DNA of 63,892 nucleotides, counting the filler, from Octopus bimaculoides (Eukaryota), in assembly GCF_001194135.2 (NCBI RefSeq). It is 6 parts of 6 records of this genome, joined end to end, with 100 filler letters (N's around TTAATTAATTAA, not from the genome) between each part and the next. Parts side by side here need not be neighbours in the genome. Positions count along the whole stretch, not along the records: positions 1 to 22,088 come from NC_069004.1; 5 more parts are not named here. One strand, given 5' to 3'. The position numbers and the translations under genes are program-made. Positions 5,151 through 21,110 of the stretch are shown here, in pieces; positions within the stretch are counted from its first letter, which is position 1; each line of letters opens with the position of its first letter. Under the pieces are notes generated by a model. That model had not been told where the DNA came from, searched no databases, and saw nothing but the letters and a program-made list of their open reading frames with translations.

Positions 5151-5284
5151 ATACGGTTATATACGAATTCGGTGGTGGAGTCTGGGACATAGACAGAGCT
5201 GAGCCCCCTGGTTACTTGGATGTCGACGAAGTCAATTCCAGTTATTACCTTATAACGAAGAAAGTCCTCGATGTAGAAGAAATG
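5151..5284 (+). CDS. Cadherin-domain gene, internal exon A (xTVIYEFGGGVWDIDRAEPPGYLDVDEVNSSYYLITKKVLDVEEM)
   Basis: ATCTTTACAG acceptor and GTAAAT donor at 5285; 134 nt, phase 1 to 0. Ends in LDVEE, resembling the cadherin LDxE motif, and joins exon B in frame. Confidence 0.72.
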
Positions 5285-5676
5285 GTAAATGATTGTTTTG
5301 TTCGATATTCGCATATGACGCCCATGCTCATGTCCGCCAACTTGCAAACATGCACAAAACAGATATACTCACAAGCAGACGTGCGTACACACACACATAC
5401 ATACGCACACACACAAACGCACGCAAACATACATACGGACACATGTACACATACACACATACATGAATACACACACATATATACGTATATATGCATACAT
5501 GAATACGATTATATACATATATAAATATGTATGCATGCATGTATGTGTCTGTCTATCTATATGTCTATCTTTGTATTCATCCACCTATCTATTTATCCAT
5601 TATATTTATCTGTCTGTTTGACTCTCTCCCTAACTATCTACCTCTCTATGTATATTATATCATATTTTTGTGTATA

Positions 5677-6079
5677 TAGGCGCGGGTATGACTGTGTGGT
5701 AAGTAGCTTGCTTTCCGACCACATGGTTCCGGATTCAGTCCCACTGCGTAGCACCTTGATCGAGTGTCTTCTACTATAGCCTCGGGCCGACCAAAGCCTT
5801 GTGAGCGGATTTGGTTGACGGAAACTGAAAGAAGCCTATCGTATATATATACATACATGTATCTGTGTTTATATGTTTGTGTGTCTATGTTTGTCCCCCT
5901 ACTATCGCTTGACAACCGATGCTGGCGTGCATACGTCCCCGTAACTTAGCGGTTTCGGCAAGAGACCGATAGGATAAGTACTAGGCATACAAAAATAAGT
6001 CTTGGTGTCGATTTGTTCGGTTAAAGGTGGTACGCATGGCCACAGTTAAATGACTGAAACAAATAAAAGAATAAAAGAA
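5677..6079 (+). mobile_element. SINE family A, near full length
   Basis: Head, central AT/GT microsatellite and 3' end all present. Confidence 0.8.
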
Positions 6080-6096
6080 TATATATATATGTGTGT

Positions 6097-7540
6097 TCTG
6101 CAAGCAACTTGCACATGCAGTGCTACCAGTCGAGAACCCGGCATAACGGAAACCAGCAAGTGTATGGGTCTGATCAGGAAAGAATGCGCGCCGTTTTGAG
6201 GCCTACCTCTCGTCAGCATCATTGCGTACCGCCCCCCACCTCGCTGATATGAGGCCCCGCTTGCTAGATTAACTGGTTATCAAATAAAGCTCAATATTCT
6301 TCTAGCCATCACTCATCGTCTCTTTTTAAACAAATCCAATGACTAGCCTTTTCCACTGTAGTTTAGTTATCGATCATGATGGTATTTACGATGAGTTAGG
6401 CCTAACGATAACAGTAGTCGTCTCACACTGTGTCCTACAAACCCTCTACATCCGAATTCGATTGGAAAATGTTCCGCTTTCCAGCCTTCATTTTCACATT
6501 CCTTAAGGAGGTTTACATAACGGTTAATCTTTCGAGTCCGAGTGGCGTCCATATTATCTTCATGAGGAACCGTTAACTCGACTAGATTCACAACTTTCTT
6601 TCATGCATTAAAATTTCTGGTTTTTCGTAACTGGGATGGGAAAGAGTCCCTCGCACCCTGGTAGATTGGAAGTCACCTCCCAATAGCCGTTCCACGTATC
6701 ATCGCTCACAGGAAGCTTGTGGTTCTTCTTGAAACGGATCCGCTGTCCTCGGCGCACGAAGGTAATGAAATGTCTAGTTGGTACTTTCAACGTTTTTTTT
6801 TCACTGTTGAGATCAATTTGGTTCTTTATAGCATTGAAGATAACATTAAAGACCAGGTTATATCTCCATGTAGGCCTGTTCAATGTTAGTGAACAGTTGG
6901 AAAGAATATGTTTCAGTGTTCCGACCTTTCTGCATTTGCATATATCATTCTCTGAGACGTTCCATCTTAATAGATTTGCAGGTCATGACAAAACATCATA
7001 GGATGAACGAATGAGAAATCCTCTCAACAACACGTTCCTCCCATCTCCTCATCTGTCTTTGTTGAATGCATTGGATCAAATAAAGCTCTTTTCTCTCTGC
7101 TTCTCTCGTTTTGACTCTGTTGCTAACAACACATCTGCGTTCGCTCCGCATCATACTTGCAAACGGTCTGAACCGATCTGCGCCAAAACCAAGTCCCTTC
7201 CGATGAATTTGCGTTGCACTCGACATATCTCGGTGTGTAAGAGAAGACAAGATATCATCTGTCTCTGCTTCTGTTTTCCACTTCCTGAATGTTTTCACCT
7301 CTGGTGGATTACACCTGATTTCCATGTCCTTTGACTCTCTCAACATCATCACCGTTCGTATCTTCCCCAGTTTATACATTTCGACTATTGACGCCTGTGG
7401 TAACTGCAACGGGTCGCTTTTACGATAAAGAGCTGAACTGTTAAATATCCGAGGTATACCTAGCCACTTTCTAATGAACACATTACATTTTTGTTCAATG
7501 ATTTGAATTCATGACAATGCCACCTGGTATATTAAAAGTG
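6097..7540 (-). mobile_element. 5'-truncated HERO-like (R2-related, restriction-like endonuclease) non-LTR retrotransposon, degenerate
   Basis: Frameshifted segments RKWLGIPR...LQLP...FRKW...GLG, TWRYNLV...FVRRG, and ELTVPHEDN...RKINRY...GW...PIEFGCRGF (RLE motifs), followed by a 3' UTR ending at an AT/GT microsatellite. Confidence 0.8.
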
Positions 7541-7658
7541 GACTTATATATAGTTTCTCTGTCTGTCTGTTCCTAATGAATTCTCAAACGGCTCCACCAA
7601 ATCAAATCAAATGTTACACGGTAATAATATGCTGAGAGAGAGAGACAGGCAGACTGGC

Positions 7659-18242: not shown

Positions 18243-18300
<58 letters not shown>

Positions 18301-19488
18301 NNNNNNNNNNNNNNNNNNNNNNNNNNNNNNNNNNNNNNNNNNNNNNNNNNNNNNNNNNNNNNNNNNNNNNNNNNNNNNNNNNNNNNNNNNNNNNNNNNNN
18401 NNNNNNNNNNNNNNNNNNNNNNNNNNNNNNNNNNNNNNNNNNNNNNNNNNNNNNNNNNNNNNNNNNNNNNNNNNNNNNNNNNNNNNNNNNNNNNNNNNNN
18501 NNNNNNNNNNNNNNNNNNNNNNNNNNNNNNNNNNNNNNNNNNNNNNNNCTGGAACCTCAACGACAAAAAAAAGAAAAGAAAAAGAAAGAGTGTTCTCCTC
18601 TTCTAAAAAATAAACAAAAGAACTCGATTTATATAAATGAACAAACTGTTTGCGCATTCACTATTTTATTTGACAACTTCGAAGACATTACTGAGAAGAA
18701 ACCATCGAAAGTAACCACCACATACAATCACCAAACATTTTCACTATTCAACACCGTCCAAGTTAACCCACTTCACCTTTAGAGCTGGCATGAAAAGCTA
18801 CGAGGAAAAGGCAACCATTTTAATTAAGCAAAAAAGAGAAAAAATTGATTGCTATTAAAACGCGTAAAATGTTGGGGTTAATAATCTTACTCTTTAGTTA
18901 CAGTTTCTCATTCATACTACATAATAGGTAGAATTGTCGGATTAAGACATGTATAGGTTTCCCTTATTGGCTCATACATACATACATATATATATACATA
19001 AAATCGAAATAAAATACTTAAAGCAACAGTCATCAAATACAAAAGCCAAGGTCCATGCAGTGTCATGGGCCAAAAAAATTTCCAACTTCTTGCCTAATGC
19101 AAGCCCAGAGCAATCTCTTCTCTCTTACATTATTTCGGTATTACATCTCTATTGTAATGTGAGATAAAAAATTTCAGTTTGAAAGAAGTCTGGCCTATAT
19201 ATATTCCTTATGCATTCCAAAACCGAGTCACAGATTTTGACGTATGGGGTATCAAAAGATTCAGTACTATTTCGGTTACAAATCAAACTTAATTTGCATT
19301 CACATATTTGCATTTCAAAAATTTAGCATTATATTCTTTCCATAAATCAACTATCGTAAACATTTTATACGATGACGTCACATTTTCTATATATGTGTGT
19401 GCCTTAAAAGACATCAATCCTCACGACACACACCGTCACTCACTCTATCTCTCTTTCTCACTCTCTTTCTCTCTCACACACACGCGCA

Positions 19489-19543
<55 letters not shown>

Positions 19544-20987
19544 ACACACTCCTTGTTACACCAAAGATGAACTGAAGGTAAGGATTATAGCAGCATTCAC
19601 CAACTTAAACAAGGCGACAGATAGAATTACAAGGCTTACAAAAAATAAGTCAGGTGTTCGATTTGTTCGACTAAAGGCGATGCTCCAGCATGGCCTCAGT
19701 CAAATGACTGAAACAAATAAAAGAATTAAAGAATAAAAAAATGAATAAATGGTGCTCCTAACATTAACTTGACTTCACTTTCCCCGCCATTAAATTTATA
19801 TATGTATATATAATTCTCTGTTGATTCTCTAGAACTCAATAGAAATGTAGAGTATTGTTAAATACGTTATAACTGAAAGTCTCCGGTTACCAGTACTGAA
19901 TGTTACTCGTTTCCGATCATGAGCGGGCAACCCGAGCCTGGTTTCCTTTTGAAATATCCATTAACTGAATATTTTTTGAAATACATCAAAATTGATTACA
20001 TCGATATAGGTTTTAGCTGAATCGTTATTTTATCGATCCCGTGAAAAATGAAAGGATAACATGCCAGTTCCAACGGGTATTCGAACTCAGAATATACGAT
20101 CACATAATTTAATACCGCAAGGCTGTTTGCCTACGATACCTTTTCTGCGAATTTAGCGCTTGAATATGCATAAATCAGTTTAATTTAAATATTTCGAGGG
20201 AATACATTTATGCATTGAAAATATTAATTTTGATAAAAACCGTTAAACTGTAAACAATTGAATTTTGATTTTAAAGACTTGTTCATCCTTTACACTGTTA
20301 CTATCGCAAAGAAACTATGCATGAAAGAATAAATAAACTGTAGAGAATGTAGGAACAGAAGTGAAATCAGGTTCGAGTGCGTGTCTTAACTGGGTTGGTT
20401 ACATATTTTCTTGCTGTTTAAGAGAATGTAGTCACGTCGGCTGAAAGCGTTTATACTTCTCTTTGTAATTGTTTATGGGGTATTCAAACTATGTCGGATG
20501 AGCCGCACGTTTTCTTCTGGCATTGTGCACATCCGACTACATTAAAAAACGTGGCATTTTTTAAACATGTTACTCGAAATAATTTTAACGACAATTTCTA
20601 ATGTATTTAGCGACGACGTAAAGTTTCCGATGACAATTGTAGTTTGTAAGGAGAAATGTGAAGGAATCTTTGTGAATTGTTCAAATAACAATGAAACACA
20701 GTCGGTTTGCTCCTTATTCGAAGGTGCTGAAGACTGCGTAGAATTTACTTTTACAGGAAGACTGACATACCTACAAATATGAACTCGTATATTTACTCAA
20801 TAAGTTGTTCTCTTCATTGAAACTAAATCACTCGAAACTGCTCTTGCAAATACAAAAATAGATGGCTATCAACATCAAAAATAAGCACAGTAGGTTTTTA
20901 ATTAAATACAATGATCAAGAAACAAATTAGGTGAGGGCTTATGTTATTATTTTACTCATAAATAACTTGTTTTATTTGTATATGCAG

Positions 20988-21110
20988 AACTCTTCGGGCG
21001 GTCTGAAAGATAAGTTCATGATGGATGATTCCGTGAACGGTACAGTCTATGTTGCTGGCCATCTCGACTTCGAACTAGAAAACCAATATATTTACGATAT
21101 AAAAGTTGAG
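20988..21110 (+). CDS. Cadherin-domain gene, exon E (NSSGGLKDKFMMDDSVNGTVYVAGHLDFELENQYIYDIKVE)
   Basis: ATGCAG acceptor and GAG|GTAAGC donor; 123 nt, phase 0-0. F-x-x-D...G-T-V-Y-V...LDFE...Y-x-x-x-I-x-V-E is typical of a cadherin EC repeat. Confidence 0.88.

Follow-up and report, generated by a model that had tools for sequence, protein, structure and literature searches.

Five exons in an Octopus bimaculoides sequence belong to an already annotated gene for a small type I cadherin, very probably of the protocadherin-15/Cad99C kind

We analysed a stretch of Octopus bimaculoides DNA of 63,892 nucleotides, filler included (hereafter the window), which consists of six parts joined end to end; the coordinates given below fall in the first part, positions 1 to 22,088, taken from NC_069004.1. 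Five segments on its plus strand, exons A to E, are, as we hold with high confidence, coding exons 3-7 of an already annotated gene of about 50 kb that encodes a small type I cadherin of the protocadherin-15/Cad99C kind. The initial annotation, made from the sequence by a model, had read these segments as spliced coding exons of an intron-rich, non-clustered cadherin, and this is borne out by a gene model of 13 exons and by a cadherin match. It had also described a hidden gene of five exons, which does not agree with what is already on record: exact mapping shows that the five are numbers 3-7 among the 13 coding exons of a gene spanning 50 kb, and the NCBI models XP_014785021.1 and XP_052832412.1 both hold all five exons. 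Since RefSeq already contains this O. bimaculoides gene with its exons and junctions, the observation is correct, but it is not new.

Exons A to E within a cadherin gene of 13 coding exons

The O. bimaculoides chromosome record CM046624.1 (GCA_001194135.2) matches this part of the window at 100% identity at about 25,114,744-25,136,831. The 163 residues encoded by the spliced exons A-E are 100% identical to residues 48-210 of the RefSeq protein XP_052832412.1 (P0162), a 430-aa O. bimaculoides protein named 'cadherin-related family member 1 isoform X1', and the older O. bimaculoides model XP_014785021.1 includes all five exons, with the same residues again 100% identical. Exact mapping of XP_052832412.1 places its 13 coding exons across 50 kb, with the same boundaries for A-E. 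Coding exon 1 is situated about 9.4 kb and coding exon 2 about 2.7 kb upstream of this part of the window (exon 2 at window-equivalent positions -2769..-2707), and coding exons 8-13 lie downstream. A copy of coding exon 2 was sought inside this part of the window and none was found, and no second gene is called in the 56-kb O. bimaculoides locus.

A single-sequence protein search gave only a shortened model of the sister species O. sinensis, which at face value would suggest an unannotated gene, whereas exhaustive and alignment-based searches found the 100%-identical protein. The word-indexed protein search with the 162-aa peptide missed both this protein and an O. vulgaris protein that is 88% identical (P0002), and the exhaustive representative search used a profile limited to the 267 columns of the O. 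sinensis protein.

All eight peptides quoted in the initial annotation were recovered on the plus strand where it had placed them, and its description of five exons of 39-134 nt with AG/GT ends and matching phases agrees with the RefSeq mapping in coordinates, splice sites and boundaries (Table 1). The exons splice to 488 nt, every acceptor consists of a pyrimidine-rich tract followed by AG, and the four junctions A/B, B/C, C/D and D/E are all in phase 0. Exon A follows the acceptor ...ctttacag and opens with the bases AT, by which the split codon G/AT of Asp48 is completed. As AG/GT ends alone are trivial, a stricter scan for splice signals was applied, asking for at least 10 pyrimidines out of 15 with YAG, a donor of the form GTRAG and 36-140 nt of open frame. 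Over the whole plus strand of this part of the window the scan returned six candidates, four of which are exons B-E, the two others (5752-5800 and 17306-17354) being located in copies of a dispersed repeat. In the list of open reading frames (ORFs; prokaryote-style, at least 90 aa), A and E are the only ones of the five exons to be covered, in both cases by run-on ORFs. The recovery from raw sequence of the exact exon structure, including a micro-exon of 39 nt, speaks well of the method. An arrangement with a start-less repeat, in which TVIYEF is the C strand and additional exons are located upstream, was examined and rejected, because both the O. sinensis locus and the full-length models join exon 2 directly to exon A.

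Exon A has an intact orthologue in O. sinensis (positions 6613-6746 of the locus L001), and the orthologue of exon C is at L001 9192-9284. Over the five exons (161 codons), comparison of O. bimaculoides with O. sinensis gave a dN of 0.056 and a dS of 0.28, that is, a dN/dS of 0.20; synonymous changes are enriched (Fisher p 1.8e-7), and the aligned blocks, mostly intron, show ~85% identity. This ratio indicates that the exons are under purifying selection, as constrained coding sequence.

Table 1. Exons A-E and the introns discussed here, in window positions
Feature	Positions	Strand	Length	Donor	Residues and content
Exon A (coding exon 3)	5151..5284	+	134 nt	GTAAAT	residues 48-92, (D)TVIYEF...LDVEEM; middle of repeat 1
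Exon B (coding exon 4, micro-exon)	8753..8791	+	39 nt	GTGAGT	residues 93-105, KRRYIFVILTCND
Exon C (coding exon 5)	11467..11559	+	93 nt	GTAAGT	residues 106-136, HNDIALSVYIKHKNEFPPRFTGPSYTISVKE; end of repeat 1, repeat 1-2 linker, start of repeat 2
Exon D (coding exon 6)	14101..14199	+	99 nt	GTAAGT	residues 137-169, NSPLGTEVF...SMKEHNV; in repeat 2, includes ENSPLGT and the acidic DYTDDQD stretch
Exon E (coding exon 7)	20988..21110	+	123 nt	GTAAGC	residues 170-210, NSSGGLKDKF...YIYDIKVE; repeat 2
D-E intron	14200..20987	+	6.8 kb		microsatellites, dispersed-repeat copies, gaps 15431-15845 and 18301-18548
3' part of the intron between exon 2 and exon A	1..5150	+			867-N gap 3991-4857; collinear with L001 1749-6583

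In the protein XP_052832412.1 a signal peptide precedes three cadherin repeats, after which come one transmembrane helix and a tail of about 28 residues; repeats 1 and 2 are each encoded for the most part in this part of the window. The type I topology was read from the RefSeq protein, which has a hydrophobic N-terminus, IWFRMLILWSVF, and a hydrophobic segment, VFIGMMTVLMLAVVSLVVALTYIII, followed by RKSRKK, both encoded outside this part; a helix is predicted, with low confidence, at residues 378-420. The Pfam Cadherin profile (PF00028) matches the spliced peptide with 36.3 bits, against a gathering threshold of 28.8 (E 7.6e-9), and the full protein with 52.6 bits (residues 130-224, aligned to profile positions 1-92 of 93); repeat 2 is the only repeat above the Pfam threshold. 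The spliced peptide also aligns with solved cadherin structures across the exon junctions. Among candidates for the calcium-binding linker motifs (xEx, DxD, DRE, DxNDN) that can be read from the sequence, ENS, DYTDDQD, LDFE and DVEDVDD belong to repeat 2, and LEEN and LDVEE are also present.

A second isoform of this gene, X2 (XP_052832413.1 and XP_052832414.1, 'cadherin-99C isoform X2', 355 aa), splices coding exon 2 straight to exon B and skips exon A, positions 9633-9698 of the locus L002 being joined to 21157-21195 (window 8753-8791). As its start is an out-of-frame ATG within coding exon 2, this isoform is devoid of a signal peptide, and it is probably a non-productive transcript.

Proposed relation to protocadherin-15, Cad99C and CDHR5

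The family profile matches the protocadherin-15 chain 11iy_C in a single collinear stretch (82-333 versus 76-350, E 6e-26) and the chain 6mfo_A over 79-332 versus 75-351, and, starting at the end of repeat 1, the match with protocadherin-15 stays in register as far as repeat 3. The linker between repeats 2 and 3, DVEDVDDLGPVF, lies opposite DVLDGDDLGPMF of protocadherin-15, and the strand encoded by exon B, equivalent in the alignment to strand F of repeat 1 and bearing the conserved Cys103, lies opposite IVVQVQC. A 1563-aa invertebrate protein (P0144), itself of protocadherin-15 type (E 2.8e-52), was also aligned in register with the family by hhalign (105-360 versus 109-376, probability 98.6), IVFQLTC lying opposite IFVILTC.

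Proteins of the protocadherin-15/Cad99C kind have been placed with CDHR5 in the 'Cr-3' cadherin subgroup, and protocadherin-15 and CDHR5 have in common a disulfide of repeat 1 between strands A and F, formed in CDHR5 by C5 and C73, with a spacing of 68 (PMC8691648). The corresponding cysteine pair of repeat 1 is present in the octopus protein, where Cys33 (DNDC, encoded by exon 2, near the mature N-terminus) and Cys103 (ILTC, encoded by exon B) are spaced by 70 residues, the bond itself being putative. Neither cysteine varies between octopus and two cuttlefish-type homologues, whose transcripts include the segment equivalent to exon B. By analogy with protocadherin-15 and CDHR5, Cys33 and Cys103 would form a disulfide between strands A and F that holds the N-terminal strand closed. 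The protein would serve on an apical membrane as a short molecule for calcium-dependent adhesion or linkage, and its tip would bind a CDH23- or CDHR2-like partner.

The octopus protein and protocadherin-15 have in common repeats 1-3 in register, the strand-F Cys of repeat 1 and a DxDDLGPxF linker between repeats 2 and 3; the cuttlefish-type homologues resemble protocadherin-15 further in that repeat 3 opens with a two-Cys loop and that the tail is rich in proline, with T-H-L at the C-terminus. However, protocadherin-15 and Cad99C have eleven repeats and a membrane-adjacent domain, whereas the octopus protein has three repeats and reaches its transmembrane helix within some 30 residues of the last one, and it differs from them further in its low identity, its degenerate repeat 1-2 linker and its short tail. 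With three repeats and no membrane-adjacent domain, it is not an orthologue of protocadherin-15/Cad99C and is at most a short relative. The initial annotation had proposed a CDHR/Cad87A/Cad23-like cadherin; the position near the CDHR/Cad99C group was retained, but there is no indication of Cad23 or Cad87A, and it is with repeats 1-3 of protocadherin-15/Cad99C that the match is in register.

The likeness to CDHR5 lies in the short ectodomain and in the spacing of the A-F disulfide (68, versus 70 between the conserved cysteines here), and CDHR5 does not appear among the PDB matches listed. With four repeats and a mucin-like region CDHR5 differs from the octopus protein, which has three repeats and no such region. 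The name CDHR1, given by RefSeq to isoform X1, designates a photoreceptor cadherin with six repeats, which the three repeats found here do not fit. Clustered protocadherins belong to the same superfamily, and their structures match the repeats at E 1e-14 to 1e-16, but the best collinear match is with protocadherin-15. Protocadherins have six or seven repeats, and the octopus protein, with three, corresponds neither to the clustered nor to the delta type. The initial annotation gave as background that cephalopod protocadherins typically encode the ectodomain in one large exon; the protocadherins of O. bimaculoides have been described as '168 multi-exonic PCDH genes' (PMC6339937).

It could be argued that the protein is a generic short cadherin and that its in-register match with protocadherin-15/Cad99C is a by-product of cadherin repeats resembling each other. 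CELSR1 and clustered protocadherins indeed score equally well or better when single sequences are used, repeat 1 alone has no PDB match, and one isoform is named CDHR1 by RefSeq. Only protocadherin-15 chains, however, give one long stretch from their own repeat 1 to repeat 3, along which both the DxDDLGPxF linker and the strand-F Cys match in position; the invertebrate protein of protocadherin-15 type is also in register, and repeat 3 begins with a two-Cys loop in the cuttlefish-type homologues, in protocadherin-15 and in this invertebrate protein. We therefore regard a generic cadherin as unlikely and favour the protocadherin-15/Cad99C kind, against which a few points nevertheless weigh. The sources disagree on the name of the gene ('cadherin-related family member 1', 'cadherin-99C' or 'protocadherin-15-like'), so that naming rests on weak similarity. 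CELSR1 comes first by summed score in every PDB search, owing to its many repeats. Repeat 1, which is without a PDB match as a lone single sequence, has protocadherin-15 as its best single-domain score only narrowly when used as a three-sequence profile (28.0 bits, versus 26.0 for gamma-protocadherin). The linker between repeats 1 and 2 is degenerate (KHKNEF for DxNDN), which makes calcium binding there uncertain. Structure prediction from a five-sequence alignment failed (mean pLDDT 42.5), so that the fold and the disulfide stand as putative.

Gene models in sister species and a possible family

The initial annotation had expected that automated annotation could fragment or miss this gene. 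This is not the case in O. bimaculoides, but it is in its sister species, as the O. sinensis model starts in exon D and the O. vulgaris models have no exon B. The O. sinensis model XP_036368679.1 (267 aa) begins at a Met inside exon D and misses the first 163 residues, as a consequence of a 1-bp deletion in the TTT run of exon D in the O. sinensis assembly (CAGCAC-TTCTAC, L001 about 9980-9990, corresponding to window 14161-14175); no gene calls were found over exons A-C in the O. sinensis locus. Exon D is in frame in O. vulgaris, as in O. bimaculoides, so the deletion is private to the O. sinensis assembly. The two O. vulgaris models, CAI9740388.1 (417 aa) and CAI9740387.1 (438 aa) (P0002 and P0152), both include the signal peptide and exon 2, together with exons A, C, D and E.

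Such defects might reflect a real loss across the genus, in which case the locus would be a decaying pseudogene or a non-functional fragment. This explanation would account for the frame-shifting deletion in O. sinensis, for the absence of the strand-F exon from both O. vulgaris models, for the O. bimaculoides isoform X2, which skips exon A and starts at an out-of-frame ATG, and for the loss in octopus of the Cys-x-Cys loop at the start of repeat 3, which is kept in the cuttlefish-type homologues and in protocadherin-15. We consider it highly improbable, however, in view of the dN/dS of 0.20 over 161 codons, with no stop in the five exons of either species, and of the 430-aa frame, which is intact throughout in O. 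bimaculoides; moreover, the O. sinensis deletion falls in a TTT run and is private to one assembly, exon D being in frame in O. vulgaris, and exon B retains its frame and both splice sites in O. sinensis. A milder alternative holds that exon B is an optional cassette exon and that the O. vulgaris protein devoid of it is a real isoform rather than an annotation miss. Two independent O. vulgaris models lack this exon and, as it is 39 nt long and in phase 0 on both sides, its skipping keeps the frame. Yet all three O. bimaculoides models contain it, and since it encodes a core strand and the invariant Cys, a protein without it would probably not be folded as a normal repeat 1, which makes an optional exon B rather doubtful. 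The O. sinensis model XP_036368679.1 can be corrected for its 1-bp indel, and the O. vulgaris models CAI9740387.1 and CAI9740388.1 for the missing micro-exon, with its core strand and conserved Cys.

The cuttlefish-type homologues are two RNA-seq-assembled proteins of 812 aa (P0031) and 817 aa (P0163, from Sepia esculenta RNA-seq runs), with loci L003-L009. Both have a cytoplasmic tail of ~390 residues with poly-proline runs and a C-terminal ...MATHL, and no cuttlefish-like long-tail exons were found downstream of the gene over 10 kb in O. sinensis and 3 kb in O. bimaculoides. The three-repeat family was seen here only in octopus and cuttlefish-type sequences, and the literature searches made here brought up no paper on it. 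These proteins might represent an uncharacterised 'mini protocadherin-15' family that keeps an Usher-type tip and forms short heterophilic links, exon B serving as a fold switch, but we would put forward this combination of features as speculation that is probably wrong in its full form. If it were true, the Usher-type tip architecture would consist of the A-F cysteine pair and the repeat 2-3 linker, to which cuttlefish adds a long tail, rich in proline, with T-H-L at its end. Microvillar or ciliated sensory cells could then bear short heterophilic links in which the partner is CDH23- or CDHR2-like, and the 39-nt exon B could switch a foldable first repeat on or off. For the window itself the significance is small, the by-products being the correctable models of two sister species and a small unstudied protocadherin-15-like family.

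Introns, assembly gaps and repeats

No exon touches a gap, so that the reading frame depends on splicing and not on continuity across the Ns. The chromosome record CM046624.1 carries the same N gaps as this part of the window, with which the O. sinensis locus L001, itself without N, runs collinear to either side of every gap. A cadherin-like open segment or an extra coding exon was sought by a phmmer scan of stop-free segments in the gap-free O. sinensis D-E intron (L001 10019-15158), and none was found. Exon D is joined directly to exon E in the models of O. sinensis (P0001), O. vulgaris and O. bimaculoides, and the cuttlefish-type homologues show at this point a three-residue insertion only.

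Several stretches of the window (5527-8502, 9727-10876, 11679-14031, about 15846-17396 and 18687-20787) have no collinear counterpart in O. sinensis, which makes each intron 1-3 kb longer in O. bimaculoides; parts of these O. bimaculoides-only stretches match dispersed repeats elsewhere in the O. sinensis locus. The G+C content is 0.40-0.43 at 5-8 kb and 9-14 kb, higher than in the rest of this part of the window. Copies of a dispersed repeat of ~400 bp are located at 1548-1906, 3806-3990, 5673-6075, 11789-12236 (reversed), 17221-17420, 19616-19737 and 21694-22032, and the orthologous locus of O. sinensis contains several copies as well (L001, about 19120, 24850 and 32930). The two candidates of the stricter scan that fall in this repeat are exon-like open segments of 49 nt with good splice signals.

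tRNA and Rfam families were sought across this part of the window and none was found, and a Pfam scan of the intronic ORFs 6996-7481 (minus strand) and 10255-10710 (plus strand) gave no match. The first of these ORFs encodes 161 aa (MFIRKWLGIPRIFNSSALY...) and is located within the O. bimaculoides-only 3-kb insert of the A-B intron; it may be a mobile-element remnant. Several long microsatellites are present. A (TCA)47 tract at 8954-9095 lies just downstream of exon B and is read on the minus strand as a poly-Asp ORF (8887-9180), and a (TTA)20 tract at 14030-14088 lies directly upstream of the acceptor of exon D. Others are (AC)64 at 767-894, (TAGA)22 at 902-990 and (CTA)22 at 11311-11376, and two are located at gap edges, (GT)33 at 4858-4923 and (TC)30 at 18229-18289.

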